A DNA stretch of 64,000 nucleotides, taken from positions 372,001 to 436,000 of the forward strand of contig OZ037765.1 in the NCBI GenBank assembly GCA_964035545.1, read 5' to 3'. This document shows positions 3,001-51,400 of this stretch, piece after piece. Source of the DNA: Bugula neritina (taxonomy: Eukaryota; Animalia; Bryozoa). A program made the translations under genes and the position numbers. Position 1 is the stretch's first letter; the number at the start of each line of letters is the position of its first letter. The notes under the pieces are model-generated. The model did not search any database. It was not told where the DNA came from and saw only the letters and a list, made by a program, of their open reading frames with translations.

Positions 3001-3481
3001 AAATAGCTTTGCTATGCCTTATCTTAGCAGTCCGCCAGTTGAGTGAAATAAAGTGTAACATGTAATATAAAATGTTTTACCATTAGTCAAATAAGTCGCA
3101 GTAATTTTTTATAACACAAGTTTAATTTTTGAAAAGGAAGTTATTAATGGCCTATACAATGAAGAATGTATTGTGTAGATTATAAATTATATATAGAACA
3201 TAAAACATAGGGTGTAGAGTGTACAGAGTATAGAGTAGATAACATAGAGTGTATAGTAGGTAGAGTAAAGAGTATATAGTATAGAATAGATAATATAAGG
3301 TATAGATATATACAGCCAGCTCAGCTAATTAACAAATTTCAAGCTTCATTTATAAACTCTTCAAAAGTTTGATATATTTTCTGTCTGTTGACCTTTAGGA
3401 GAGAGAAAATATGTTTCCTGTTAATATTTTGTTAAATAATGTAAATGATTTTTGTGTATTTATAGACGGAGACTGAGAAAC

Positions 3482-4813
3482 ATGGCTGCCAACTCTTCTA
3501 CGGGGAATGATACCCTAGCACAGCTCGCCAACCTGACCATCAACATGTTTGAGTGTGACAACGAAATCGATCTCAACGATGTATACATGAAGCATATTCC
3601 AGCTGCACTGACCACCAGTAAAATTCTCTCTCCAATATGGTGGAGCATCGGAATTGTGGGTAACATCCTGGCACTTCTGGTCTGGCTGCAACCGAAGATG
3701 AGACACAGTTCGGGGTTCTATTTAGCGGCTCTAGCAGTCTCGGACATCATCTTCCTGGTGTTCCGCATGGTGTACGAGATACATTACATCTACAACAAGG
3801 ATCTACTTGACAAGCAGGTTCTGTGTCAGTGGTTCCCTATCTCCTTCATGTCTGTCCAGATATTATCCCCCTTGTTTGTCCTGGCGTTTACTGTCGAGAG
3901 ATATCTGTCTGTGTGCCACCCGTTCCGTATGGTGAACCTCCACCAGAGTAACCACAAGGTCACCATGCTAGTCATCACGGGGCTCACCTTCCTGGCCTTT
4001 GGTCTCAGTGCCATACAAGGCTACTTCTTTACAGTAGAAGACGGTATCTGTAACATCAGACTAGTTGTGAGCACGTCCGGCCTGCTCGCCAGATACTCCT
4101 GGACTACGGAGATGCTAGTTTTTGCTGCGGTCCCGCTAACTATTCTCTGCCTGAATGTCTTAGTGATTCTAGAAGTCCGTAATATATCTAATCTGGAGAA
4201 ACAGAACATGAGAATAAAGAGTATTGATCAGAGATCCACCACACTAACTCTTCTAGGAGTTTCTTTCTACCTCATCCTAACCATCTTCCCTGTCACCATC
4301 ATCTTTGTCCTCTACAACACCTACGGTGACAAGAAGCTGAACCTAAACCTCTGTCTAACTGACGAAGAGATCAATAACGACGCGGCCTGGCAGTCACACC
4401 TCAGATACACAAGTTTTAAGATCCTTATCGAGGCAATCTGCCAATCTCATCACATGATCAACTTCTTTATTTACCTGCTGATGGGGAAGCAATTCCGAGT
4501 GCAACTTCGCGAGATGGTGATAATGTTCTTCTGCAAGAGGAAGCTGTCGCATGTGGCAGTCAACACTAATGGTCTCTGTAACGGCACGAGGACAACCAGA
4601 GCTAGCGTGTCCTCCAACAGAGGAAGTATCGGGCGCGGTCGGCTGAACGGAGTTGTCAAATGCGAGACAGATCAGTGTAACAATGAGAAGAATGGGAGTT
4701 GTGTGTACCACGTGGGCGAGATAGAAGCCGACAGTCATATAATCTCTAACAACGCTGCCAATATGAAACTGCTGACTTGTGAGGAAGAGTCTGAGGTAGA
4801 TCTGAATGACTGA
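3482..4813 (+). CDS. Class A (rhodopsin-like) 7TM GPCR, FMRFamide/sex-peptide-receptor-like peptide receptor group
   Basis: Single-exon ORF with 7 hydrophobic segments: GIVGN (TM1), LAALAVSD (TM2), FTVERYLSVCHPF (TM3, ERY), VPLTIL (TM5) and INFFIY (TM7). The first ATG is at 3482, just after a tttatag acceptor (3464-3465), so the track's 3452 start is intronic. Confidence 0.9.
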   Translation: MAANSSTGNDTLAQLANLTINMFECDNEIDLNDVYMKHIPAALTTSKILSPIWWSIGIVGNILALLVWLQPKMRHSSGFYLAALAVSDIIFLVFRMVYEIHYIYNKDLLDKQVLCQWFPISFMSVQILSPLFVLAFTVERYLSVCHPFRMVNLHQSNHKVTMLVITGLTFLAFGLSAIQGYFFTVEDGICNIRLVVSTSGLLARYSWTTEMLVFAAVPLTILCLNVLVILEVRNISNLEKQNMRIKSIDQRSTTLTLLGVSFYLILTIFPVTIIFVLYNTYGDKKLNLNLCLTDEEINNDAAWQSHLRYTSFKILIEAICQSHHMINFFIYLLMGKQFRVQLREMVIMFFCKRKLSHVAVNTNGLCNGTRTTRASVSSNRGSIGRGRLNGVVKCETDQCNNEKNGSCVYHVGEIEADSHIISNNAANMKLLTCEEESEVDLND

Positions 4814-7668
4814 TTGATGGATATGAAGTGGATGACTTTATTACATTCCTAGTCCGGTTAGGCTGGCCGCACGATCAGTATACTCATGTATTGTACCTCA
4901 AAAGATAATTATGCGTTATAATTTATTAGACTTCCCTTTTGTTATAGCTAAAATAAATTTGTATATATTTTGTAAAAATGATTGTTCATATAATAATGTT
5001 ATTAATATTTTAATTTAGTGAAAACAATTAATGTATATATTGATTCATAAATATTTATTACATTTAATATCCTGCCAACTATTTGAATCACTTTTCATTT
5101 CGTGTCAATATTTTGTGAAAACATTTCCTATTAATAGCCACATAAATTTTATTATTTATTTTCTATGAGCAGTAAAATGATTTATTATAATTATATAAAT
5201 AAACTAGTGTGAATATTGCATCACATAAAGGAATGTGTAAAGCCAACATCAGTATATACAACCGCAGAGCACACACTGTTGAAGTCTTGCTACTGAATAT
5301 ACAGTCTCAAATTGCTACGAGATCTTCTAACTATTTGTAAAGTGAAAACACTAGTCAGTCATACAAATATTATACTGGTTATGCATTCATGACTTTGTGA
5401 AGATTAAATCTCAATCTTCCATTAAACTAAAAACGTTACGTTAGACTCTGAGGAAACTCTTTGTGTAGTTCATTACAAAATCTCATGTTTTGTGAAAAGA
5501 GAAAATATTTTTAGATGTAAGAATATTATTTCAACGTCTTGCTTGCTGAATGAGCCAAGGCATGTCTCTGTAGCCACTGGAATAACGGAGCTTAGAAACA
5601 AGCAGTTATTAGGAAAGTTGGTTTCTACATGCACACTGTTGTTCTATAAGAAAACTAGAAAATAAATTAATCATAATATTATGAAAAATTATAAATCATA
5701 TTTACATCTCATCTCATATTTCTAATTGTTGTAATTTCTTAAAATAATAAAATAAGAACTATAATTATAATATTTTAAACATTCAATTTATGAATATTAT
5801 GCTGAGATAGTTGCACTATAATATTATATATATTTTACCCACACGCATTTTCTGCTACTAAATTGGTATATGAGCCTGAGTCTATATATAGCTTCAGGTC
5901 CTAAGTCTATGAGAGAGTGAGATGTCTATCTCGCAGTACATATTATAAGCCTGTGTACTGAGCAGCAATATAAGCTTCATTAGCTTATCAGCAAAACCAT
6001 CACTGTGACAATGTCACTGATTCCAAGTGTCAGTTTTATGAATGAAAGTTTTAGGAAATCACTCTACAAAAGTTGAGACTTTGCAGCAGACGATTAAAGC
6101 AAATCTGCACTTCGTAGTCATCAATAATTATCTATTGTGCATAGAAGACAACTTCCACTGGCAAACACTAATTTATAAAAAGCTATTTTTAGCTGGTAAT
6201 GTATACATGACTTTCACCTAGCTGTCACAACTATAATACTAATGACTCACTAAGAGAATAATGATGAGTTTACTAAAAGCATTCCTTATAAAGATAACAC
6301 AACTTTACAATAACACATGGAAAGCATTGAGAAGGGAATGTGATACGAAAATCTATCAGATAAGATGGAATCAGAGCATGTAGCGTACAGGTGAGGTAAA
6401 TACTACAGTGTCAGGTAACAGAGGTGATGTACAGTTCATTGGTTAATGTGAATAAGTGAAAGGTGTTTAGTAATAATAAAGAATGTTTCGTTGAATTTCT
6501 TACAATATAATAATATTTAATTCTGTAATACCTGTTAGATCCCATATAGCTACTGTATAATATATACTCTCTACTAATACTAGATCCTAGCTACTGTATA
6601 ATATACCCTCTACTAATACTAGAAAGTCAATGTTGTAACTGTTTGTGATTGTCAGTCAAACTGTTTTGGTTTTAAACGCATAAAAACACATAAAAATGTA
6701 ACAAAATAATAAATGCATAGCAACTTTAATGTTATATACAATATTGAATAATAACAACAAGTGGTATAGAACAGTTGAAAGTATAATATACTAAAGTACA
6801 TGCTAGGTAAATAGACCTCCTCTCTCACCCCTCTCTCACCCCTCTCCCCCCCCCCCCCCCCAGAATATTTACTCATGTAGCCTCTTCAGGCGTACGGAGT
6901 CAGTTAGAATGAACAAGTTTCATGTGGAGGAGACAACTTAAAGTACTTCATATCTGTATTTATTGCTGGTCTTGTATACTGCTATATTACTATATTACTA
7001 GAAGAGCAAATGAGGGCTTACACTGGTTGTGGAAACATTAGACAGGGGGGGAATAACTTCAGATACTATGCATATCCAGCGGGGGGATAACTTCACACTA
7101 TTTGAAGAGAAATATCACTGTGTAACATGCAGATGAATCGAATATGACAAACTCAAGTAGTATTAATGCTAGCAAAAAGTCCTCAAATACTCACCCAGTA
7201 TTTCTACAGTGTCTCAGTCTAAATCCCTCGCTCTAGCACCAGGTCAAGGTCAAGTTGTAGTTTAAGAATATGTGAGCTCTGAGATTTAATATAACACTGT
7301 CTATAAATAAGATTTTACTTTGGTTTTGAGAGTAATACAGACCAATAGAAAAGTACTGAGTATAAAGGTGCTTGTATAATAGAAGAGCGAAGTTGAAAAT
7401 GATTTTAACATTTAATATCCAGTCCAATAAAATTTAAAACGCCGACAAAGATGGAAAGACTATACTGACATGAAATGCCGGACTTTAAATTGGCAAGCCA
7501 GGCTGAGATAACTGATTGAGCTTCGAACTACATATACTAGTTTCAGTTGTTTGGGCCAGGCTAAAAACAGAATAATATTAAATGTAGCATAAAATTGCTA
7601 ACTCTTATTATGTTACCAAAATTTAATATAGCAGTAAATCACAATAAATCGACTTTATTTTAAATATT

Positions 7669-7962
7669 GTGTGTGTGCTGTGTGTGTGCTGTGTGTGTGC
7701 TGTGTGTGTGCTGTGTGTGTGCTGTGTGTGTGCTGTGTGTGTGCTGCGTGCGTGCTGTGTGTGTGTGTGTGTGCTGTGTGTGTGTGTGTTGTGTGTGTGC
7801 TGTGTGTGTGCTGTGTGTGTGTGTGCTGTGTGTGTGCTGTGTGTGTGCTGCGTGCGTGCTGCGTGCGTGCTGCGTGCGTGTGTGCTGTGTGTGTGCTGCG
7901 TGCGTGCTGCGTGCGTGCTGCGTGCGTGCTGCGTGCGTGCTGCGTGTGTGCTGCGTGTGTGC

Positions 7963-7998
<36 letters not shown>

Positions 7999-8011
7999 CG
8001 TGTGTGTGTGT
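7669..8011. repeat. Compound (GT)n/(GTGCTGT)/(GCGT) microsatellite
   Basis: Visible directly; it explains the Cys/Val and His/Thr ORFs in all frames. Confidence 0.95.
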
Positions 8012-8280
8012 GATGTTTAAAGTAGATGCAGTATATATCATTACACAGATTCTTATTGAATTACACAACTATAAATACATTCCGGGGTTCAATACACAAA
8101 CACAAGCCATCAGTATACTTGACTGCCCTTCAAAAGATTATCTTCTTTGAGCATTTCAATAAAATGCAAGTCAATAAGTAAGAGTATCCAGTAGCAGTTG
8201 CCAAAGTAGACTCTAAACTCAAGTAATCAGTTACATAATGCAGAAGGAGGAAAGTGCAGGCTATATTCTACTGGGTAGTT

Positions 8281-8338: not shown

Positions 8339-8577
8339 TGATGGAAGATTTCTTGAAGGTATAAATTAATACTAAGTCATTTTAAAAATAAGATTTAGAA
8401 ACATTGAAATAAACTATATTTTCCAAAGCAAAATATTCCAAGAACAGGAAAAAAAGCAAAATTCTGTGGTCTGGACATTTCTTTTATATAAACTTTGTCA
8501 TCCATTGTAAAATTCTTATAACTGGAGCTAAATGAACTCTTGGAGAGAAGTGTAGTATATATATGCAGTGAAATAGA

Positions 8578-11500
8578 ATGAATTTTACGCCATTTAGCGA
8601 AACAGAACTGCACAGAGCCAAAAATAGAAGGGCAGCAAAACTTGCTGTCGAGTCAGTCATACCAGAAAAACAAAAAGACTTCATCTTATGTAATAATGAA
8701 GCTTGGTGCACAGCTTTACACACAGCTGCTGGGAATAGTAGAACCGATGTGGTGGAGTATCTCTGTAAACTCTGTCAAGATAGTGATGAACTGATACTAA
8801 AAAAAGATTGTTATGGTAAGACAGCGCTACACCATGCTAAAACTCGAGACGTAGCCGAAGTACTCGTATCATCAGTCACATTTGAAAGGCAGAGAGAATT
8901 TATATTATCTTGTGACAAGAATGATCGTACAGCCTTGCACGCAGCTGCTAGTGAGGGTAGAACAGATGTAGTGGAATATCTCTGTAGATTACTTCCACCT
9001 GATGATGAACTAGTACTTAAGAAAGATAGGTATTACGGTGGAACAGCCCTGCATTATGCTGCGAATGAAGACATAGCCAAACTACTTGTATCATCAGTTA
9101 CACCGAAGAGGCAGAGAGAATTTATATTATCTTGTGACACAAAACAGCGCACAGCTTTGCACGCAGCTGCTAGTGAGGGTAGAACTGATGTAGTGGAGTA
9201 TCTCACCAGGTTATACCCATCTGATGATGAACTAATACTAAGCAGATGCTGTCACGGTTGGACAGCGCTTCATTATGCTAGGAATAGAAAGATAGCAGAG
9301 TTACTTCTGGAATCAGTCTCACCAGATGTGAAGAGAGAACTCGTTTTCTGTGTTGATGAAGACGAGTGTACAGCATTGCATGCAGCTGCAACTAGTGGCA
9401 GAACTGATGTGGTGACGTATCTCTGTGGATTATATCCAAACAATGATGAACTGGTGTTAAAGAAAGACAGTTATTTTAGAAGAACCGCGTTGCACTTTGC
9501 TAAGAATGGAGAGACAGCAAAAGCCCTAGTAGAAGCAGTTAGTCCGGACAAGCAGAAAGATTTTATATTCTCCCCAGATAAGGAGTTATGTACAGCACTG
9601 CACGTAGCTGCTTCATACGATCGGCCTGGGGTAGTAAAATATCTGTGTCGCCTGCCTCCTTGTATTAGCGCTGACCTTCTACTAGCACAAGATGCCGGCA
9701 GCCACACGCCTCTACATAATGCCTCCAGTGGAACTGTTGCTCTGAAACTTCTTTCCTTCCAAGAGCTTTCTGCAATAAGCAAAGTATTGGTAGCAGAAGA
9801 TGATAGAGGTAACACATGTATGTTGTGGCTATGTCAGCAAGGGCAACACGGTGCTTTGAGTGAACTCCTTCAGTTTGTAGAGGAAAGCTATGACTCACAG
9901 ATATTGAAGACTCATATACGTAAACGTAATAAATTGGGTCAGAATATATTGCACCTTGCTGCCTTGTCAGCATCTCTTGACGAGCTATTTGATGTGCTGC
10001 AAGATTACCTGCACCTAATGGATGTCAAGGACATGATGCATCCAGATATATATGGCAATACGCCAATACATTATGTTGCTGCCAAATATAACGTCGGCAT
10101 TTTCACTAACTTAATTCTACATCTTCCCATGTCAATAAGGCAAGGCGTTCTAGGTTTACCAAACATACAAATGACCGACTGCAAAAAAATAATAAAAACA
10201 AAATCGTTCCATAAATCATTTTATTTTCATAAAATACTTTGCAATAGAGAAGCCCCAAATATGTTTGAAACGCTCAAGGTTTTAAAAGCTGGATTGTTTT
10301 CAACCCACACAGACTATCGTGATAGCGTGTACAAGTTTACGGAGAATATTCTCAAAGTACTAAAATATTGCTTGAATGAATATTCGCTGCTGGACTCTGC
10401 TTACACGACGTCACATACTCTGTTCTCTTCGGCTGTGGGTGCACAGCACGCTTTTGTTTCAGCAACTCAGAGAAGCCAAATGCAGGCAGAAGAGGTAAGT
10501 ATATGATAGAGAGAAGAGGTAAGTATATGATAGAGACAAGAGGTAAGTATATAGTAGAGTGAAGAGGTAAGTATATGATAGAGAGAGAAGATGTAAGTAT
10601 CTGATAGAGAAGAGGTAAGTATATAATACAGAGAGAAGAAGTAAGTATACGATAGAGAGGAAGTAAGTCTATAACACAGAGAAGTGCTTTGAGTCTGGCT
10701 TAATTATTTTTATAATTCATGAAGTAAATAACATATGGTTGAATGATATTAACATATTTACCAGTAATAGAACAATACAATAGATCTCTATAGTATAGGA
10801 TGTATTGGATCTGTATATACCATAGAGAGTGTTGGAGGATGATGTCATGTGCATCGTAATAGACATGAGCAGAGTTCACCAACCTAAACAGGAAACAGCC
10901 CAGAATATTCTCAATGATATGGATCAGCCCAGCTACAGTGCTAAACCTAAGGCATAGTTCATCATAGTATAATAGCTATCATACTATTATATATTATTAT
11001 ATTAAATATACCATGTGTCAGCAGGTAGCTGTCATATATGTCATGTGTCAACAGGTAGCTGTCATACATGTCATGTGTCAACAGGTAGCTGTCATACATG
11101 TCATGTGTCAACAGGTAGCTGTCATACATGTCATGTGTCAACAGGTAGCTGTCATACATGTCATGTGTCAACAATTAGCTGTCATATATGTCATGTGTCA
11201 ACAGGTAGCTGTCATATATGTCATGTGTCAACAGGTAGCTGTCATACATGTCATGTGTCAACAGGTAGCTGTCATACATGTCATGTGTCAACAGGTAGCT
11301 GTCATACATGTCATGTGTCAACAGGTAGCTGTCATACATGTCATGTGTCAACAGGTAGCTGTCATACAAAGCTCTGTGAAAGAATCTGAGTCAAATCTCA
11401 CACCACCAGGTCCTGACTATCTGATAATCTCAGTGAAGTATGGCTCAGAAAACTATGAAAGGTGAAGGTTACATTATATCCATCACATTATCATTCACTA

Positions 11501-13559
11501 ACGGCAGTCATTAACTCTAAAAATTTATAATAATAGCATAATTATTGTTGTATAACGTTTGTTATAACAGCAAATATGCAGATATAAGAAAGCATGACTC
11601 GATGCACTCGCTGGTTACTGAGTTCACAAAGGATCCTAATGTGAGGAAAGTTACTGTAAACTCAACTCTAAACAAGAAGTACACCAGGGACAATATTGAC
11701 CACAATGTGTCTGAGATAGGCAGAGTAGATAGCAGTGATAGGCACAGTCCATCGGTTAGGGAAGGAGTGAGACTTTTTGATGAGAGTGGCAATAATGAGC
11801 TGGAGTATTCTCAGAAACTGTTAATCAGTAGCGAGACAAGAGGGAAAGCGCTGATAATCTGTAACCAACATGAGTCTAAGCCAGGAATGACAGCCAAAGA
11901 ACTGGCTACTGTTGCATCTCGAAAAAAAGCGCTCAAAACCTGTGAAACTGTTTTCAACCAGTATTTTGGTTTTGAGGTACTGTTAAAAAAATTTAAAGCA
12001 TGCTTCCTCAATTTGAAAGTTCTATTTAGTACGTCTGGCGTTTAATTTGCTTTCTTTCTGAAAGCTTGGCCTAGCTATGTTTAGCTTTATGACTTTGCCT
12101 TTTGGACAATGTAATTCATTTTATTAGGTGGTGAGCAGAGTTGATTTATCAGCAACAGAAATTCTAAACTCCATTTCACAATTCTCCGCATCTTCTGATC
12201 ATGGATTGATGGCAGCCTTAGCAATCTTCTCACATGGATCTCAAGGTCAAATCATGGGAGGTGACGGCTATTCGCTATGTTCAGTACAGGATATTATTAA
12301 TTCTTTCAACAGCGGAGCTGTCCAAAGCATCCCTAAAGTTAGTTTAATTTCTCTTTTGAATTCTTGCCAGAAGTAGATTTTAATAAAGAAACTGATAGAA
12401 CTGATGAGAAAGCAGTTAGAACTTGTTTGGCTATTTAATTATGCTGCTGAATTTAAATGCAATACAGTTTTATTTTATAAGCATTGAGAACTGTAGGTAA
12501 TATAAATCATGCAATAAGTCTTTATTATTTCATTTAAGTTTAGTAAAATGTAAGCAAGGTAATATATTCTTCACAAAAGATTCATCATTGCACAGCATAA
12601 TTCTTAGCAAAAATGACATGAAATTTATTGAGCGCTTTCAAGGAAACTTAAGCATATGCGCTCCTGGTGCTACAGGTTTTTATATTCTCTTATTTTCACT
12701 TTCATAAGAATTTGGTGTAGAAATTTACTCTTGAGTCAACCCAATTTTGACCGCAACTAATTGCTTACTAATTTATTTGTAGTTGCTTCTCCTGTCTTGC
12801 TGTCGGGGAAACATTTTACGAGAATTCAATAGAGCTCCAGACAGCTTTGAGTCGAGTACTGAATTCCCATGGCCGGAGAATGAGGTGACACTCTTATATC
12901 AACCAATCAGAAAGGTGATGGATGAATCCTTTAAAAAAAGGAAATGGAGCGAAACGGCTTTCCCAGTTCTAGAAATTCCAGTCGACTGTTACTTGATGTT
13001 TTCTACTCTGCCAGACAGCAGGTAAATCTTCAAAATATTCTCCGAGATTGGCTCTGTTATATTGAAGATCTCCCTCTTAAAAACACTTCTCCATGCATTC
13101 CTTCTACTAGTTACTAGCAGATAATACTTCTCTATAGATTACCTCTACTGGTTAGTTACTAGCAACCTGTTTCAGGTATTGTGGGTACTTTTTATCTCAA
13201 GGTCTAAACGGGAGCTTATGATTAGCTGCTTACTAAATCACTTGAGAGAGATGACAGGTGGATCCAGAAGTGGACTGGTTACCCCTACCACCACTACATC
13301 TGACGTCATTGCATTACAGACGGACAGAGCAACACTGAGGGATGACTCTGTGTTACGAAGCAATACTAACTCCGTGTCTACTAGCAGTAGAAACAATCCT
13401 GTAGTCAGAGTAGAGTTGCTTAATTTACTCACAGATGTAGCTGGAATTATGAGGGAAATATCCAGGTCAACACAATATGCTAATCTATGTTATACTACTG
13501 ATAGAAACAGTAAACAGATTTTTCTTGACATGCTGACACCTAGCGCTGATATATGCTGA
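8578..13559 (+). CDS. Ankyrin-repeat / caspase (peptidase C14) fusion protein, multi-exon
   Basis: Inferred exons: 8578-10494 (ANK array, repeated TALHxAA), optional 10826-10951, 11355-11461, 11571-11976 (GKALIICN...YFGFEV), 12128-12337 (AIFSHG, ends IPK), 12783-13021 (LLLLSCCRG, DCYLMFSTLPD) and 13202-13559 (p10-like, ends KQIFL...stop). Phases are mutually consistent with GT-AG sites, except that the optional exon needs a GC donor. The ANK-to-caspase linkage is inferred from phase compatibility. Confidence 0.75.
10488..10670 (+). repeat. ~24-bp tandem repeat containing the 5' splice site (GAAGAG|GTAAGT)
   Basis: About 8 copies of gaagaggtaagtatatgatagaga, starting at the end of the ankyrin exon. 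Confidence 0.9.
11012..11368 (+). repeat. 30-bp tandem repeat containing a 3' splice site (CAG|GTAGCT)
   Basis: About 12 copies of gtagctgtcatacatgtcatgtgtcaacag; the last copy runs into coding sequence (VAVIQSSVKE). Confidence 0.92.
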
Positions 13560-13675
13560 CACCTAGCTCTGATACAAGTTGATACCTAGCTCTGTTACAT
13601 GCTGATACCTAGCTCTGATACATGTTGACACCTAGCTCTGATACATGTTGACACCTAGCGCTGATACATACTGAT
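13528..13675 (+). repeat. ~21-bp tandem repeat overlapping the caspase stop codon
   Basis: tgacacctagctctgatacatg-like units begin inside the last codons (MLTPSADIC*) and continue into the 3' UTR. Confidence 0.8.
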
Positions 13676-27641: not shown

Positions 27642-30474
<2,833 letters not shown>

Positions 30475-39421: not shown

Positions 39422-42400
39422 TTAGTCATCGCTGTCACTCAGCACCCCCGCCCTTTTCTTCTTGCCGGAGAGAGCCCTGGCTATGGTTATGTGATCATCA
39501 TCCGACTCTGATGAGTCAGAGTACGTCTGCGTAAGAGCCGTGGCCGGAAATGAGTCTGAAACACAACGTCTGCATCTCAGTGGTGGATCCAGGAATTTGG
39601 TTTGTTAATCAAATGTGAATCAAACTTGATGAAAAAACACAAAATAACCAGCAAAAAGTGATAAAAAACTAATATTCTGTTGGCCTTTCCTAGTTGGGGT
39701 ATTTCATATTAGAGTTGTCCTCTCTACTGTATATAGCCTAGCAACAAGTGCTTTCATTGGTAGTTTGTAATGGTAGCACTAACCCTTTCAGCTACAACAT
39801 CGCTATGGCCACAGCTTAGTATACCTGTTAATATACACAAACTAGATAAACTATTAGAATCTAACCAAACTGAACAGGGGGCTGTTTTCCCTCGGCATTT
39901 GAATTCTCGTTTGTATCCATCCTATCCCCTTCACCAGTCACTGGCTCCGCCCCTTGAGAGAGTAACTCGTCTGCAGGCATGTGGGAGTTGTCCACCTTCC
40001 TTCTCTTTCTGAGACTTGGAACTGAAGAGACTCTAGAGGTGTCCAGAGTTGTGTTCTCTTTGTCACCTTCTGAGTCATAATCAGTACAGTTCAGATGCAA
40101 ACAACTCCAGTCATGGAAAGATAACTCCAGTATAACAAGTTTGCTTAGCTCAATTTTATTTAATTTCTAGTAGAAACTCAACGTACATAAAAACAATAAA
40201 GCAAACTTTTGATTAAATTTTACTTTCTTATTTAGTGCAACTGAGTACCAAAATCAATTAATGTAATATTTATATCTACTACAAGGCAAAACCTCAAGTG
40301 ACATCTTACAGAAGAAAACTTTTAGTTCAAGTCACATGAAACTCACAAAAAATATCTCTACTCAATTTTCGATTTACTCTAGCCAATTTAGATTGAGTGC
40401 CATATAATAGCATAGAGCAGAGGCTACATTATTAACTTACATGAAACACAAAGTCTACTAAGTGGAGAGATAACTCCCACTATCAGGAGGTCTACTACTA
40501 CACTAACCTGAATCACTGTCACTCTTAGACTCAGTTCCAGCCCTCACTCGCCCCTTCCTTGCAGTCCCTGTGTCTAGTTTAACTCCACTGTCACTACACA
40601 GAGTTCAAGGTATAAAGTACCACCAAGTTGTGAGTTAGTGTGATATACTCGAGAGTTAGTGTGATATACTCGAGAGTTAGTGTGATATACTCAAGAGTTA
40701 GTGTGATATACTCAAGAGTTAGTGTGATATACTCAAGAGTTAGTGTGATATACTCAAGAGTTAGTGTGATACACTCAAGAGTTAGTGTGATATACTCAAG
40801 AGTTAGTGTGATATACTCAAGAGTTAGTGTGATATACTCAAGAGTTAGTGTGATATACTCAAGAGTTAGTGTGATACACTCAAGAGTTAGTGTGATATAC
40901 TCAGGAGTTAGTGTGATATACTCGAGAGTTAGTGTGATATACTCAAGAGTTAGTGTGATATACTCAAGAGTTAGTGTGATATACTCAAGAGTTAGTGTGA
41001 TATACTCAAGAGTTAGTGTGATATACTCGAGAGTTAGTGTGATATACTCAAGAGTTAGTGTGATATACTCAAGAGTTAGTGTGATATACTCAAGAGTTAG
41101 TGTGATATACTCAAGAGTTAGTGTGATACACTCAAGAGTTAGTGTGATATACTCAAGAGTTAGTGTGATATACTCAAGAGTTAGTGTGATATACTCAAGA
41201 GTTAGTGTGATATACTCAAGAGTTAGTGTGATACACTCAAGAGTTAGTGTGATATACTCAGGAGTTAGTGTGATATACTCGAGAGTTAGTGTGATATACT
41301 CAAGAGTTAGTGTGATATACTCAAGAGTTAGTGTGATATACTCAAGAGTTAGTGTGATATACTCAAGAGTTAGTGTGATATACTCAAGAGTTAGTGTGAT
41401 ATACTCAGGAGTTGGTGTGATATACTCAAGAGTTAGTGTGATATACTCGAGAGTTAGTGTGATATACTCGAGAGTTAGTGTGATATACTCGAGAGTTGGT
41501 GTGATATACTCAAGAGTTAGTGTGATATACTCGAGAGTTAGTGTGATATACTCAGGAGTTAGTGTGATATACTCAAGAGTTAGTGTGATATACTCGAGAG
41601 TTAGTGTGATATACTCGAGAGTTGGTGTGATATACTCAAGAGTTAGTGTGATATACTCGAGAGTTAGTGTGATATACTCAGGAGTTAGTGTGATATACTC
41701 GAGAGTTAGTGTGATATACTCGAGAGTTAGTGTGATATACTCAAGAGTTAGTGTGATATACTCAGGAGTTAGTGTGATATACTCGAGAGTTAGTGTGATA
41801 TACTCAAGAGTTAGTGTGATATACTCAAGAGTTAGTGTGATACACTCAAGAGTTAGTGTGATACACTCAAGAGTTAGTGTGATACACTCAAGAGTTAGTG
41901 TGATATACTCAAGAGTTAGTGTGATATACTCAAGAGTTAGTGTGATATACTCAAGAGTTAGTGTGATATACTCAAGAGTTAGTGTGATATACTCAAGAGT
42001 TAGTGTGATATACTCAGGAGTTGGTGTGATATACTCAAGAGTTAGTGTGATATACTCGAGAGTTAGTGTGATATACTCGAGAGTTGGTGTGATATACTCG
42101 AGAGTTAGTGTGATATACTCGAGAGTTGGTGTGATATACTCAAGAGTTAGTGTGATATACTCGAGAGTTAGTGTGATATACTCGAGAGTTGGTGTGATAT
42201 ACTCAAGAGTTAGTGTGATATACTCGAGAGTTAGTGTGATATACTCAGGAGTTAGTGTGATATACTCAAGAGTTAGTGTGATATACTCGAGAGTTAGTGT
42301 GATATACTCGAGAGTTGGTGTGATATACTCAAGAGTTAGTGTGATATACTCGAGAGTTAGTGTGATATACTCAGGAGTTAGTGTGATATACTCGAGAGTT

Positions 42401-45400
42401 AGTGTGATATACTCGAGAGTTAGTGTGATATACTCAAGAGTTAGTGTGATATACTCAGGAGTTAGTGTGATATACTCAGGAGTTAGTGTGATATACTCGA
42501 GAGTTAGTGTGATATACTCAAGAGTTAGTGTGATATACTCAAGAGTTGGTGTGATATACTCAAGAGTTAGTGTGATATACTCAAGAGTTAGTGTGATATA
42601 CTCAAGAGTTAGTGTGATATACTCAAGAGTTGGTGTGATATACTCAAGAGTTAGTGTGATATACTCAAGAGTTAGTGTGATATACTCAAGAGTTAGTGTG
42701 ATATACTCAAGAGTTAGTGTGATATACTCAAGAGTTAGTGTGATATACTCAAGAGTTGGTGTGATATACTCAAGAGTTAGTGTGATATACTCAAGAGTTA
42801 GTGTGATATACTCAAGAGTTAGTGTGATATACTCAAGAGTTAGTGTGATATACTCGAGAGTTAGTGTGATATACTCAAGAGTTAGTGTGATATACTCAAG
42901 AGTTAGTGTGATATACTCAAGAGTTAGTGTGATATACTCAAGAGTTAGTGTGATATACTCAAGAGTTAGTGTGATATACTCAAGAGTTAGTGTGATATAC
43001 TCAAGAGTTGGTGTGATATACTCAAGAGTTAGTGTGATATACTCAAGAGTTAGTGTGATATACTCAAGAGTTAGTGTGATATACTCAAGAGTTAGTGTGA
43101 TATACTCGAGAGTTAGTGTGATATACTCAAGAGTTAGTGTGATATACTCAAGAGTTAGTGTGATATACTCAAGAGTTAGTGTGATATACTCAAGAGTTAG
43201 TGTGATATACTCAAGAGTTAGTGTGATATACTCAAGAGTTAGTGTGATATACTCAAGAGTTAGTGTGATATACTCAAGAGTTAGTGTGATATACTCAAGA
43301 CTTAGTGTGATATACTCAAGAGTTAGTGTGATATACTCAAGAGTTAGTGTGATATACTCAAGAGTTAGTGTGATATACTCAAGAGTTAGTGTGATATACT
43401 CAAGAGTTAGTGTGATACACTCAAGAGTTAGTGTGATATACTCGAGAGTTAGTGTGATATACTCAAGAGTTAGTGTGATATACTCAAGAGTTAGTGTGAT
43501 ATACTCAAGAGTTAGTGTGATATACTCAAGAGTTGGTGTGATATACTCAAGAGTTAGTGTGATATACTCAAGAGTTAGTGTGATATACTCAAGAGTTAGT
43601 GTGATATACTCAAGAGTTAGTGTGATATACTCGAGAGTTAGTGTGATATACTCAAGAGTTAGTGTGATATACTCAAGAGTTAGTGTGATATACTCAAGAG
43701 TTAGTGTGATATACTCAAGAGTTAGTGTGATATACTCAAGAGTTAGTGTGATATACTCAAGAGTTAGTGTGATATACTCAAGAGTTGGTGTGATATACTC
43801 AAGAGTTAGTGTGATATACTCAAGAGTTAGTGTGATATACTCAAGAGTTAGTGTGATATACTCAAGAGTTAGTGTGATATACTCAAGAGTTAGTGTGATA
43901 TACTCAAGAGTTAGTGTGATATACTCAAGAGTTAGTGTGATATACTCAAGAGTTAGTGTGATACACTCAAGAGTTAGTGTGATATACTCAAGAGTTAGTG
44001 TGATATACTCAAGAGTTAGTGTGATATACTCAAGAGTTAGTGTGATATACTCAAGAGTTAGTGTGATATACTCAAGAGTTAGTGTGATATACTCAGGAGT
44101 TGGTGTGATATACTCAAGAGTTAGTGTGATATACTCGAGAGTTAGTGTGATATACTCGAGAGTTAGTGTGATATACTCGAGAGTTGGTGTGATATACTCA
44201 AGAGTTAGTGTGATATACTCGAGAGTTAGTGTGATATACTCAGGAGTTAGTGTGATATACTCAAGAGTTAGTGTGATATACTCGAGAGTTAGTGTGATAT
44301 ACTCGAGAGTTGGTGTGATATACTCAAGAGTTAGTGTGATATACTCGAGAGTTAGTGTGATATACTCAGGAGTTAGTGTGATATACTCGAGAGTTAGTGT
44401 GATATACTCGAGAGTTAGTGTGATATACTCAAGAGTTAGTGTGATATACTCAGGAGTTAGTGTGATATACTCGAGAGTTAGTGTGATATACTCAAGAGTT
44501 AGTGTGATATACTCAAGAGTTAGTGTGATACACTCAAGAGTTAGTGTGATACACTCAAGAGTTAGTGTGATACACTCAAGAGTTAGTGTGATATACTCAA
44601 GAGTTAGTGTGATATACTCAAGAGTTAGTGTGATATACTCAAGAGTTAGTGTGATATACTCAAGAGTTAGTGTGATATACTCAAGAGTTAGTGTGATATA
44701 CTCAGGAGTTGGTGTGATATACTCAAGAGTTAGTGTGATATACTCGAGAGTTAGTGTGATATACTCGAGAGTTGGTGTGATATACTCGAGAGTTAGTGTG
44801 ATATACTCGAGAGTTGGTGTGATATACTCAAGAGTTAGTGTGATATACTCGAGAGTTAGTGTGATATACTCGAGAGTTGGTGTGATATACTCAAGAGTTA
44901 GTGTGATATACTCGAGAGTTAGTGTGATATACTCAGGAGTTAGTGTGATATACTCAAGAGTTAGTGTGATATACTCGAGAGTTAGTGTGATATACTCGAG
45001 AGTTGGTGTGATATACTCAAGAGTTAGTGTGATATACTCGAGAGTTAGTGTGATATACTCAGGAGTTAGTGTGATATACTCGAGAGTTAGTGTGATATAC
45101 TCGAGAGTTAGTGTGATATACTCAAGAGTTAGTGTGATATACTCAGGAGTTAGTGTGATATACTCAGGAGTTAGTGTGATATACTCGAGAGTTAGTGTGA
45201 TATACTCAAGAGTTAGTGTGATATACTCAAGAGTTGGTGTGATATACTCAAGAGTTAGTGTGATATACTCAAGAGTTAGTGTGATATACTCAAGAGTTAG
45301 TGTGATATACTCAAGAGTTGGTGTGATATACTCAAGAGTTAGTGTGATATACTCAAGAGTTAGTGTGATATACTCAAGAGTTAGTGTGATATACTCAAGA

Positions 45401-48400
45401 GTTAGTGTGATATACTCAAGAGTTAGTGTGATATACTCAAGAGTTGGTGTGATATACTCAAGAGTTAGTGTGATATACTCAAGAGTTAGTGTGATATACT
45501 CAAGAGTTAGTGTGATATACTCAAGAGTTAGTGTGATATACTCGAGAGTTAGTGTGATATACTCAAGAGTTAGTGTGATATACTCAAGAGTTAGTGTGAT
45601 ATACTCAAGAGTTAGTGTGATATACTCAAGAGTTAGTGTGATATACTCAAGAGTTAGTGTGATATACTCAAGAGTTAGTGTGATATACTCAAGAGTTGGT
45701 GTGATATACTCAAGAGTTAGTGTGATATACTCAAGAGTTAGTGTGATATACTCAAGAGTTAGTGTGATATACTCAAGAGTTAGTGTGATATACTCGAGAG
45801 TTAGTGTGATATACTCAAGAGTTAGTGTGATATACTCAAGAGTTAGTGTGATATACTCAAGAGTTAGTGTGATATACTCAAGAGTTAGTGTGATATACTC
45901 AAGAGTTAGTGTGATATACTCAAGAGTTAGTGTGATATACTCAAGAGTTAGTGTGATATACTCAAGAGTTAGTGTGATATACTCAAGAGTTAGTGTGATA
46001 TACTCAAGAGTTAGTGTGATATACTCAAGAGTTAGTGTGATATACTCAAGAGTTAGTGTGATATACTCAAGAGTTAGTGTGATATACTCAAGAGTTAGTG
46101 TGATACACTCAAGAGTTAGTGTGATATACTCGAGAGTTAGTGTGATATACTCAAGAGTTAGTGTGATATACTCAAGAGTTAGTGTGATATACTCAAGAGT
46201 TAGTGTGATATACTCAAGAGTTGGTGTGATATACTCAAGAGTTAGTGTGATATACTCAAGAGTTAGTGTGATATACTCAAGAGTTAGTGTGATATACTCA
46301 AGAGTTAGTGTGATATACTCGAGAGTTAGTGTGATATACTCAAGAGTTAGTGTGATATACTCAAGAGTTAGTGTGATATACTCAAGAGTTAGTGTGATAT
46401 ACTCAAGAGTTAGTGTGATATACTCAAGAGTTAGTGTGATATACTCAAGAGTTAGTGTGATATACTCAAGAGTTGGTGTGATATACTCAAGAGTTAGTGT
46501 GATATACTCAAGAGTTAGTGTGATATACTCAAGAGTTAGTGTGATATACTCAAGAGTTAGTGTGATATACTCAAGAGTTAGTGTGATATACTCAAGAGTT
46601 AGTGTGATATACTCAAGAGTTAGTGTGATATACTCAAGAGTTAGTGTGATATACTCAAGAGTTAGTGTGATATACTCAAGAGTTAGTGTGATATACTCAA
46701 GAGTTAGTGTGATATACTCAAGAGTTAGTGTGATATACTCAAGAGTTAGTGTGATATACTCGAGAGTTAGTGTGATACACTCAAGAGTTAGTGTGATATA
46801 CTCGAGAGTTAGTGTGATACACTCAAGAGTTAGTGTGATATACTCAAGAGTTAGTGTGATATACTCAAGAGTTAGTGTGATACACTCAAGAGTTAGTGTG
46901 ATATACTCGAGAGTTAGTGTGATATACTCGAGAGTTAGTGTGATATACTCAAGAGTTAGTGTGATATACTCAAGAGTTAGTGTGATATACTCAAGAGTTA
47001 GTGTGATATACTCAAGAGTTAGTGTGATATACTCAAGAGTTAGTGTGATATACTCAAGAGTTAGTGTGATATACTCAAGAGTTAGTGTGATATACTCAAG
47101 AGTTAGTGTGATATACTCAAGAGTTAGTGTGATACACTCAAGAGTTAGTGTGATATACTCGAGAGTTAGTGTGATACACTCGAGAGTTAGTGTGATATAC
47201 TCAAGAGTTAGTGTGATATACTCAAGAGTTGGTGTGATATACTCAAGAGTTAGTGTGATATACTCAGGAGTTAGTGTGATATACTCAGGAGTTAGTGTGA
47301 TATACTCAAGAGTTAGTGTGATATACTCAAGAGTTAGTGTGATATACTCAAGAGTTGGTGTGATATACTCGAGAGTTAGTGTGATACACTCAAGAGTTAG
47401 TGTGATATACTCAAGAGTTGGTGTGATATACTCAAGAGTTGGTGTGATATACTCAAGAGTTAGTGTGATATACTCAAGAGTTAGTGTGATATACTCAAGA
47501 GTTAGTGTGATACACTCAAGAGTTAGTGTGATATACTCAAGAGTTAGTGTGATATACTCAAGAGTTGGTGTGATATACTCAAGAGTTAGTGTGATATACT
47601 CAAGAGTTAGTGTGATATACTCAAGAGTTAGTGTGATATACTCAAGAGTTAGTGTGATATACTCAAGAGTTAGTGTGATATACTCAAGAGTTAGTGTGAT
47701 ATACTCGAGAGTTAGTGTGATATACTCAAGAGTTAGTGTGATATACTCAAGAGTTAGTGTGATATACTCAAGAGTTAGTGTGATATACTCAAGAGTTAGT
47801 GTGATATACTCAAGAGTTAGTGTGATATACTCAAGAGTTAGTGTGATATACTCAAGAGTTAGTGTGATATACTCAAGAGTTAGTGTGATACACTCAAGAG
47901 TTAGTGTGATATACTCGAGAGTTAGTGTGATACACTCAAGAGTTAGTGTGATATACTCGAGAGTTAGTGTGATATACTCAAGAGTTAGTGTGATATACTC
48001 AAGAGTTGGTGTGATATACTCAAGAGTTAGTGTGATATACTCAGGAGTTAGTGTGATATACTCAAGAGTTAGTGTGATATACTCAAGAGTTAGTGTGATA
48101 TACTCAAGAGTTAGTGTGATATACTCAAGAGTTAGTGTGATATACTCAAGAGTTAGTGTGATATACTCAAGAGTTAGTGTGATATACTCAAGAGTTAGTG
48201 TGATATACTCAAGAGTTAGTGTGATATACTCAAGAGTTAGTGTGATATACTCAAGAGTTAGTGTGATACACTCAAGAGTTAGTGTGATATACTCGAGAGT
48301 TAGTGTGATACACTCAAGAGTTAGTGTGATATACTCAAGAGTTAGTGTGATATACTCAGGAGTTAGTGTGATATACTCAAGAGTTAGTGTGATATACTCA

Positions 48401-51400
48401 AGAGTTAGTGTGATATACTCAAGAGTTAGTGTGATATACTCAAGAGTTAGTGTGATATACTCAAGAGTTAGTGTGATATACTCAAGAGTTAGTGTGATAT
48501 ACTCAAGAGTTAGTGTGATATACTCAAGAGTTAGTGTGATATACTCAAGAGTTGGTGTGATATACTCAAGAGTTGGTGTGATATACTCAAGAGTTAGTGT
48601 GATATACTCAGGAGTTAGTGTGATATACTCAAGAGTTAGTGTGATATACTCAAGAGTTAGTGTGATACACTCAGGAGTTAGTGTGATATACTCGAGAGTT
48701 AGTGTGATACACTCAAGAGTTAGTGTGATATACTCAAGAGTTAGTGTGATATACTCAAGAGTTGGTGTGATATACTCAAGAGTTAGTGTGATATACTCAG
48801 GAGTTAGTGTGATATACTCAAGAGTTAGTGTGATATACTCAAGAGTTAGTGTGATATACTCAAGAGTTGGTGTGATATACTCGAGAGTTAGTGTGATACA
48901 CTCAAGAGTTAGTGTGATATACTCAAGAGTTAGTGTGATATACTCAAGAGTTAGTGTGATATACTCAAGAGTTGGTGTGATATACTCAAGAGTTAGTGTG
49001 ATATACTCAAGAGTTAGTGTGATATACTCAGGCAGATAAATGCACTCTATAGTACATACTATAGCATATACTATAGTACATACTATAGCATATACTATAG
49101 TACATACTATAGCACATACTATAGTACATTCTATAGCACATTCTATAGCACATTCTGCAGTACTGTGACCTCTCACCTGTCTGATGAAGAGTCGTCTGAA
49201 CTGAGAAACTCTTTACTTTTAGGAGGTCTGAAAGAGAATAGATAAAGTATTCAACACATATTTCAGTCCCATACATAAATAAATCTGAAACATTACATCA
49301 GGAAGTGAAACTCAACTGACCTTTCAAGTTCCATGCTATCTTTAGCTGCGGGTTTTCTTCTTTGTGTTGCCTTAGGTTTGGCATTCGCAGCTACAAAGTG
49401 AAACATCGGAGTGATATAGTCATAATATCATATCAAAAACTCACAGCACGATATACTATATCATAGGTGTGATATATATCATTAGCTTGTAGTATTTAGG
49501 TAATCATCACGATGTATGAATTTAAAGGCAAACATTTTTATCGGACCAGTTTGATACTTTAGCAAGCTGTAAATGAGTCAGTATAACGACTAGTCATAGA
49601 TGAGTCAACTTTTCTCATTTCTCAAGTGTTGACTCTGTCTAACACTTCATTGCATGCAATGCCAGGCAAGAGATGAGAACCCTACAGCACTATCCTGTTG
49701 TATAACTCCAGCTGTGTACCTAGCTGTCAGGGGAGGCATTCTTCAGCTGTATAGAAATAACACAGCACTTGTTGCTGTAACTTGTTTGTCGAATGTAAAA
49801 TAATGAAATGTAGAGAACTACAATCAACTCTGTGAGAGACAAACTCACCTTTCTTCTGCTTCCGGCATTTTCCGTTCCTTGAAGCACTTGCTGAAGGGAT
49901 GTTGTACTGCAGATCTAGTCTAGGGAACTCCCCTCCACTCTCTGGATCCAAGGCAGCGTCCAGCTGACGGAGGACGTCCGGACTCAACTCGAGGGAAATT
50001 CTCCAGAATTGCTCCTGCAAAGACACAGCGTAAACCGATGACATCACAGCTACCAATCACAACCGTAACCTCGGTATTACAACGAGCAGCAGACTTCCTG
50101 ACCCACCTGCTCATCCACAGGGGGGTTAACTCCGACAGTATATAGAAACTTCTGGAATACTGCATTCTGCAGAGCAACTTCACATTCCTCCATGAGTGGA
50201 ATGAGGGGCGTGGCTTCCGGCTCTTCGTCCTCTGAAAGCAAACAGCCAATGAGACGTCAGTACAACACTACAGCAGACGACATACTATATACTACAGCAG
50301 ACTATATACTAAATACTACAGCAGACTATATACTACAGCAGACTATATATTATATACTACAGCAGACTATATACTACAGCAGACTATATACTATATACTA
50401 CAGCAGACTATATACTAAATACTACAGCAGACTATATACTACAGCAGACTATATATTATATACTACAGCAGACCATATACTACAGCAGACTATATACTAT
50501 ATACTACAGCAGACTACATACTAAATACTACAGTAGACTATATACTATATACTACAGCAGACTATATACTAAATACTACAGTAGACTATATACTATATAC
50601 TACAGCAGACTATATACTAAATACTACAGCAGACTATATACTATATACTACAGCAGACTATATACTATATACTACAGCAGACTATATACTATATACTACA
50701 GCAGACTATATACTACAGCAGACTATATACTATATACTACAGCAGACTATATACTATATACTACAGCAGACTATATACTAAACACTACAGCAGACTATAT
50801 ACTATATACTACAGCAGACTATATACTATATACTACAGCAGACGACATGCTAGACCCACCATCTTCCCTGTCGTCTGCAGTTCTATTGAAGCTTCTCCTC
50901 AGCCAGTTTAGACTGAGTTCCATGGAAGGCATTTCCCTCAACTGTAAGAGTAGCTCTAGAGCGTCCCCTCTCTCCAGTCCACTGAATGGATGGGTGGGTG
51001 CTGAGACTAGCTCTGTATCACTTTCCTCTTCAGAACTGCTAGAATTACCTGGTAAATACGATACCAGATCTGATGTGATGGTAGTAACAGGAAGTCTAAC
51101 TGCTGGTTTAACTTCCTGTTAAGTTAATTATCCGCTGAAGGACGATTTGAGTTACACCAATAGAATAACAAGTGATGTGTATATTAGTCAGTAACGCCAT
51201 TCAACTGGATTTAAACAGCACAAATAGGTTACAAGAAACTTCGTTAGAACCAGCTTGTAGACCAGCAAAATATTTAATATAAAATACAATGAGATGCAAA
51301 TAAAAATAACAAATTGTGTATAAGATTCAATATAAACGGTGAAAGGATGATGAAACATATAAAACTAACAAGTTATTATGTAATCAAGGAAAGCATCACT

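Follow-up and report, generated by a model that had tools for sequence, protein, structure and literature searches.

Caspases in which ankyrin repeats form the prodomain (ANK caspases) have been named in parasitic flatworms, Schistosoma being where they were first noticed, and also in one annelid, Alitta virens (Genome Biol Evol 2024, PMC11463336). The ANK-caspase clade was called specific to parasitic flatworms in that work, which sampled no bryozoan; the flatworm clade was monophyletic and sister to the DED caspases, and a caspase with a ROC prodomain was described in the annelid Owenia (PMC11463336). Among the papers that were searched, none dealt with bryozoan ANK caspases. The present analysis concerns a locus of the bryozoan Bugula neritina at 8578-13559 of a stretch of 64,000 nucleotides (hereafter the window; positions 372001-436000 of contig C1, OZ037765.1, in a 216-Mb assembly), and all positions given below count within the window unless another contig is named. 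The preliminary description of this stretch had proposed an ankyrin array fused to a caspase. In the present study the locus is read as one seven-exon protein-coding gene, the predicted product of which would consist of an ankyrin array, a linker, a spacer and a divergent C14A caspase. With the mechanism discussed below included, the probability of this reading is put at roughly 0.7.

As was found by the Pfam search, the open reading frame (ORF) at 8578-10506 of the plus strand, 642 amino acids (aa) in length, is rich in ankyrin repeats (Ank_2, E 9e-53; Ank, E 9e-45). A phase-0 donor, GAG/GTAAGT at 10494/10495, closes an ankyrin exon of 639 codons three codons ahead of the in-frame stop (10504-10506), and the ~640-aa ankyrin-rich exon with a strong phase-0 donor that had been claimed is thus present. 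The exons that follow on the same strand are designated X, B, C, D, E and F, the ankyrin exon being exon A (Table 1). The splice phases are, in order, 0, 0, 2, 0, 0 and 2; they were verified by arithmetic and by the junction codons, and all searches were made exon by exon. All seven exons are open, and the gene is compact, spanning 5 kb. The predicted product has 1120 aa with exon X and 1078 aa without it, the frame being kept both ways. The caspase motifs quoted previously all lie on the plus strand: ALIICN within 11571-11976, SHG within 12128-12337, PK/LLLLSCCRG across 12337/12783 and MFSTLP within 12783-13021, and the p10 helices are represented by helical p10-like sequence in the last exon. 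This motif series exceeds chance by far. The exons occur colinearly, in this order, at 18 further loci that were fetched.

The downstream exon series of the preliminary description stood, but it needed correction in three respects. The junction from 10494 to 11355 is in frame, whereas the direct junction from 10494 to 11571 is out of frame and was rejected. The conserved exon X had been missed. Finally, the last exon really starts at 13202, where it follows ctcaAG/G and the junction codon (AG+G) is Arg; a start at cag/G 13175/13176 was rejected, as it shifts the frame and runs into a stop after 15 codons. The junction between exons E and F is kept in 13 of 13 loci, with exon E plus two bases (AA or AG) joined to an acceptor of the form ...ag/[AG] TCN AAR, and the junction codon specifies Lys or Arg in every one of them.

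Comparison across the genome indicates that the gene is a member of a lineage-specific expanded family of about 20 genes, and the suspicion of such a family was borne out by the presence of the same exon series at about 20 loci of this genome. At least 177 exon-level matches to Peptidase_C14 were counted in the genome, which on this measure has a very large caspase expansion. Eighteen family loci were fetched (L001-L014 and L018-L021). In all 18 the exon series is colinear, save for exons that fall outside the fetched stretch or are too diverged to match. Exon C has 19 matches in the genome, all beside ankyrin ORFs and on the same strand; exon B was found at 16 loci, each adjoining an ankyrin ORF and caspase exons; exon E was found at 19 loci, none of them away from an ankyrin ORF; and the exon-F profile gave 22 matches at about 20 loci, all in the ankyrin-caspase family. 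The ankyrin ORFs of the family range from about 600 to more than 3000 codons. At the level of gene models, an ankyrin prodomain lies N-terminal to a caspase in one protein at about 20 loci.

The window gene is a compact singleton member on C1. Most family members lie in two tandem clusters on C8, at 7.33-7.59 Mb (at least nine copies) and at 8.69-8.71 Mb (two copies). Single copies occur on C1 (several), C2, C3, C4, C6 and C9, and one of the C6 copies has an ankyrin frame of 3025 codons. The B. neritina gene labelled 'TRPA1' (L022) was set aside; it is an ankyrin gene not related to this family, and no caspase follows it.

It is very likely that a single gene joins the ankyrin array to the caspase. 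The case for fusion is a comparison of genomic loci, which takes into account exon order, internal exons, phases and spacing. According to the competing explanation, there are two adjacent, co-duplicated genes, one for an ankyrin protein ending at 10504-10506 and one for a short-prodomain caspase that starts at 10507-10826 or within exon X. The ankyrin ORF has indeed its own in-frame stop three codons past the donor, and a near-invariant Met occurs in a ..N-D-M-D.. motif near the end of exon X. However, the part of exon X upstream of this Met is conserved as protein. Across all 15 close loci the exon shows 38-54% amino-acid identity, is always 126-129 nt long and a multiple of three, always begins in phase 0 behind a pyrimidine-rich AG acceptor and always closes with ..KPK; in most copies no start codon stands between that acceptor and the conserved coding sequence. 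Exon B likewise has its acceptor at a homologous position in all 14 fetched paralogues; no ATG opens exon B in any of them, a stop lies directly upstream in seven, and a usable start was found in none. Judged by this comparison, exon X and exon B alike are internal, whichever copy is considered.

The sole conserved coding exon upstream is the ankyrin ORF. In 10 of the 15 loci it bears a consensus phase-0 donor 1-5 codons ahead of its stop, which matches the phase-0 start of exon X. The distance from the ankyrin stop to exon X is only 95-370 nt in 9 of the 15 loci (322 nt in the window, mostly minisatellite), and a terminator, a second promoter and a first exon would hardly fit into such a space. 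The exon order, the internal exons, the matching phases and the very short spacers at about 20 loci make one gene most likely, and a pair of separate genes appears quite unlikely.

Records of proteins were considered in the same connection. P0146, a 126-aa model in the published Bugula neritina assembly, splices X to B to C. It begins downstream of the ankyrin ORF, as two separate genes would have it, although it does so at a contig end and with a first exon that has no counterpart in the paralogues. The search for a protein of the bryozoan family containing both ankyrin repeats and Peptidase_C14, made with ankyrin-ORF queries and an exon-C profile, found none in the databases, all matches being fragments of genomic ORFs; given the limits on protein length in the search, this null is uninformative with respect to fused proteins. 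P0146 is a fragment of an ankyrin-caspase gene at 7276-11565 of L028 (GCA_010799875.2, contig VXIV02001913.1); pieces of an ankyrin ORF lie just upstream of it, and exon F of another copy lies further upstream. It seems that the ankyrin-caspase family is under-annotated in the published assembly.

Table 1. Exons of the ankyrin-caspase gene and tandem repeats at its boundaries (positions within the window).
Feature	Position	Strand	Description
Exon A	8578..10494	+	Start codon, ~14 ankyrin repeats, helical non-ankyrin tail, phase-0 donor GAG/GTAAGT
Exon X	10826..10951	+	126 nt, 42 codons, phase 0 to 0, C-terminal ..KPK
Exon B	11355..11461	+	35 codons + 2 nt; phase-0 start; AG/GT end
Exon C	11571..11976	+	Linker motif, variable spacer, first caspase strand, Arg, helix 1; donor GAG/GTACTG, phase 0
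Exon D	12128..12337	+	70 codons, p20 core with catalytic His; phase 0 to 0, ends ..IPK
Exon E	12783..13021	+	SCCRG pentapeptide, inter-subunit linker, p10-like strand VDCYLMFSTLPDS; AG/GTAAAT end with 2 extra nt
Exon F	13202..13559	+	1 nt + 118 codons + stop; p10-like C-terminal part, Thr/Ser-rich insertion
24-bp minisatellite	10488..10684	+	~8 units; Tandem Repeats Finder
30-bp minisatellite	11012..11368	+	~12 units; Tandem Repeats Finder
23-bp minisatellite	13528..13674	+	~6 units; Tandem Repeats Finder

The repeats of exon A comprise five double-repeat units of 74 aa and about four further repeats, and extend up to residue ~555. The AlphaFold model of exon-A residues 400-639 (20-sequence alignment, pLDDT 78) contains an ankyrin-like solenoid to residue ~555, followed by a low-confidence stretch and a long helix, and the tail beyond the ankyrin repeats is conserved, helical and non-ankyrin. 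The proposal that ankyrin repeats occupy the place of a death fold agrees with these results. No Pfam match to CARD, DED or the Death domain was obtained at E<=1 in exons A or C, and a six-helix bundle was not seen in the model of residues 400-639, by which the idea of a death fold hidden in the tail of exon A was rejected.

A conserved family-specific module of ~120 residues is formed by the exon-A tail together with X, B and the initial ~40 codons of exon C. Exon B bears the conserved IAVIQSS...PPGPDYLILSVKY module, and exon C opens with the conserved linker motif ..VNSTLNKRY.., after which a variable spacer follows. In loci L011, L014 and L012 (proteins P0126, P0136 and P0133), this spacer is made of long acidic (..EERETDD..) or Ser/Gly/Pro-rich repeats, variable in number; in the window copy it is short. 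Intron phases 0, 0 and 2 are common to exons X, B and the start of C and to exons D, E and F. An hhalign comparison brought the ends of X and D into register up to their last residues (..KPK/ versus ..IPK/, E 0.009), and the other two exon pairs gave no significant match. The X/B/C-start module has neither the catalytic His nor the catalytic Cys, and the look-up of P0146 in the ESM Atlas gave nothing usable for the fold of the linker module. The shared phases and the X-D alignment faintly hint at a degenerate half-caspase in cis, which may serve as a lead.

The caspase part is most readily recognised in exon D, which taken alone matches Pfam Peptidase_C14 (PF00656) with 31.2 bits against a cut-off of 21.4 over profile positions 44-128. 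Its profile matches CED-3 (E 1.2e-9), caspase-2 (E 4e-6) and caspase-9 (E 3e-4). The codon of the catalytic His (12233-12235) lies in SHG at 12230-12238, which aligns to the SHG of CED-3, and this His is invariant in 12 paralogues. The codon of the catalytic Cys (12801-12803) is part of the pentapeptide SCCRG, which comes directly after ..IPK/ of exon D. The Cys, Arg and Gly of the pentapeptide are invariant in the 12 paralogues (alignment A3), which are only 45-63% identical overall. The position of the canonical Gln is occupied by Ser in 10 of the 11 aligned copies and by Cys in L012, and the position of Ala by Cys, Ala, Tyr or Ser. In exon C, residues I95, C97, N98 and R117 are invariant among 11 paralogues (alignment A1), the strand being KALIICN.

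Caspases bind Asp in a basic S1 pocket formed by Arg179, Gln283 and Arg341 (caspase-1 numbering), and in canonical caspases the Gln of QACRG contacts the P1 Asp. The candidates for S1-pocket residues in the bryozoan family are the invariant exon-C Arg before strand 2 and the Lys or Arg at the junction of exons E and F, both placed by spacing and not by significant alignment. These candidate basic residues suggest that an acidic P1 residue would still be preferred, and the change from Gln to Ser makes strict Asp specificity uncertain.

The claim of a complete caspase fold was upheld as regards the order of the motifs, but only exon D is statistically a caspase. Exons C, E and F gave no caspase match by Pfam (E and C at E<=10), by PDB profiles or by profile comparison. 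When the family exons were compared by hhalign with a canonical caspase that a single exon of this genome encodes, the alignments covered no more than the short strands that were to be expected and were not significant. Exon F carries a long Thr/Ser-rich insertion (alignment A4), and the p10 half is strongly derived. A complete fold is plausible from the motif order; the intact fold and the activity are predicted only, and sequence comparison does not link exons C, E and F to caspases.

The SCCRG pentapeptide in place of QACRG, the three exons that escape detection as caspase and the insertion in exon F would also suit a fused gene with an inactive caspase-like part, that is, a pseudo-caspase scaffold as in cFLIP-like proteins, with the ankyrin array acting as an adaptor or decoy. 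Among ~20 copies of a dead enzyme, however, one would expect some to lack the catalytic dyad, but the His, the Cys and the Arg-Gly are invariant across the 12 diverged paralogues. Besides, exon E differs from its near-orthologue by eight synonymous changes and a single non-synonymous one. An inactive scaffold is therefore unlikely.

The near-orthologue contigs are ~91-94% identical to the window gene. Contigs L015, L016 and L025-L027 were considered as possible cDNA and rejected as such, being colinear with the window through the introns and hence genomic DNA. The exons are 92-96.5% identical to those of the near-orthologue (exon B, 96.5%), and the introns 80-89%; all splice sites from the exon-B donor through the exon-E donor are kept. 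The dN/dS ratio is 0.28 for the ankyrin exon compared with L015 and 0.22 for exons B-E compared with the near-orthologue. Judging from these ratios, purifying selection acts on the ankyrin half as well as on the caspase half.

The donor of exon X is an exception among the splice sites. It reads AAG/GCATAG (10950-10957) in the window, whereas AAG/GT is found in all 14 paralogues and AAA/GTATAG in the near-orthologue, both L026 and L027 having GT. Exon X of the window differs from that of L026 and L027 by one non-synonymous and four synonymous substitutions. This comparison indicates that the GT-to-GC change in the window is recent. Exon X may be used there through the GC donor or skipped in frame, which leaves the precise isoform uncertain.

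Three minisatellites coincide exactly with boundaries of the gene, namely the intron-1 donor, the exon-B acceptor and the stop codon. The 24-bp unit repeats the intron-1 donor (AGAGGTAAGTA...), the first copy alone preceding the in-frame stop, and at least two such units are also present in the near-orthologue L015. The 30-bp unit joins the exon-B acceptor to the opening 14 nt of that exon, the frame of which is open through all units (ORF 11013-11465), so that use of acceptors further upstream in the array would add units of 10 aa. The array appears to be about four units shorter in L026, a contig of the relative of ~92% identity. The 23-bp repeat starts in the last codons and crosses the stop codon.

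The GC donor, which exon X has in the window only, and the position of the intron-1 donor, the exon-B acceptor and the stop region each inside a tandem repeat might be taken as signs of decay, the window copy being an unprocessed pseudogene of a functional family with its splicing disturbed by the GT-to-GC change and the minisatellites. GC-AG introns are functional in animals. The seven exons are open, the other splice sites are intact, skipping of exon X keeps the frame, the dN/dS ratios of 0.22-0.28 point to constraint, and two of the minisatellites (intron-1 donor, exon-B acceptor) also occur in the relative. It is very improbable that this copy is decaying. A compact and intact copy under purifying selection would be a practical candidate for cloning and activity assays.

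Initiator caspases are activated by induced proximity, and caspases are normally wired to death-fold adaptors. From this mode of activation, together with the architecture of the gene, a mechanism is inferred. The ankyrin solenoid would replace CARD or DED as the surface of recruitment or regulation, or would hold the protease. Binding of a partner or ligand, or self-association of the arrays, would gather the caspase domains, which would then activate by induced proximity. Each protein would thus be a one-chain sensor-protease, plausibly serving the colony in immune defence, allorecognition or regulated cell death. Direct sensing of a ligand by the ankyrin array is possible, and autoinhibition of the protease by the array is conceivable; both are pure inference. 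A large family tying caspases to ankyrin arrays of variable length would represent a different switch for a death or immune protease, in a colonial phylum whose immunity and allorecognition are almost unstudied. A broader version of this idea is that bryozoans independently built, and then multiplied into a family, NTPase-free one-chain sensor-proteases, in which variable ankyrin solenoids directly bind pathogen or allogeneic ligands and a degenerate half-caspase in cis gates a caspase with rebuilt P1 specificity. This version is doubtful; if true, it would amount to a design of innate immunity or allorecognition uncharacterised in any animal.

Several of the results weigh against the reading of the locus as a single gene for an ankyrin-caspase sensor-protease. 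They include the start of P0146 downstream of the ankyrin ORF, the lack of a fused protein of this family on record, the failure of exons C, E and F to match caspases and the uncertainty of the isoform left by the GC donor of exon X. Furthermore, the dN/dS of 0.28 in the ankyrin exon gives no sign of diversifying selection relative to the orthologue, and so lends no positive support to a fast-evolving sensor in the case of this copy.

On C1, the ankyrin-caspase gene is flanked by a GPCR gene and by unrelated sequence. The upstream neighbour, at 3452-4813 (+), is an intronless ORF of 453 aa for a rhodopsin-type GPCR (Pfam 7tm_1, E 1e-20). The start codon is preceded, at a distance of ~560 bp, by a (TG)n-rich microsatellite (7668-8016). 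About 142 bp just upstream of the ATG (8435-8576) are missing from L015, where a pyrimidine-rich ..CAG stands 4 nt before the ATG; judging from this alignment gap, the segment may be an intron of the 5'-untranslated region. An open frame at 28036-28647 (-) with a match to SH2 (E 3e-5) is probably an exon of an unrelated gene. Further downstream, an 8.4-kb satellite at 40632-49030 consists of ~400 copies of a 21-bp unit with 96% matches, and it accounts for a GC skew of 0.4-0.46 and for spurious ORFs of 2800 codons on both strands.

The best sequence matches to the p20-core exon of the bryozoan gene are initiator caspases of the CARD type (CED-3, caspase-2 and caspase-9), which likewise have a long N-terminal prodomain. 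By analogy with them, the long prodomain suggests activation by recruitment. The bryozoan gene differs in that no death fold was detected by the searches described above, in the presence of Ser in place of the Gln of QACRG, and in a C-terminal half too diverged to align. A different likeness is offered by a gene for a Roc/LRR-prodomain caspase, located a few kb further upstream on C1, in which, as in the ROC-prodomain caspase of Owenia, a repeat or switch domain also replaces the death fold. The N-terminal domains of the two are different, and exons C, E and F match only ankyrin-linked loci, which indicates that this neighbour is not a close paralogue. Caspase-8 and cFLIP pair an active with a dead caspase-like domain, and the X/B/C-start module may parallel this pairing in cis, in view of the phases and the X-D match.

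The closest resemblance is to the ANK caspases of flatworms and Alitta virens. In both these and the bryozoan family, an N-terminal ankyrin prodomain replaces CARD or DED ahead of a p20/p10 caspase, and both are lophotrochozoan and functionally uncharacterised. The architecture, though real, consequently has precedents and does not constitute a new kind. As to whether it is common and already characterised, a possibility raised in the preliminary description, it has been named in flatworms and Alitta virens but not characterised functionally (PMC11463336). Compared with the flatworm ANK caspases, the bryozoan family has about 20 paralogues and not a single type, its ankyrin exons reach more than 3000 codons, it possesses a private linker module (X, B and the start of C) and the SCCRG pentapeptide, and its p10 half finds no relatives outside the family, the profiles of exons C and F matching bryozoan fragments only. 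The restriction of these profile matches to bryozoans fits, but does not establish, a separate origin from the flatworm ANK caspases. With the bryozoan family, ANK caspases would no longer be confined to flatworms and a single annelid, and the published statement that they are specific to parasitic flatworms would need revision (PMC11463336).

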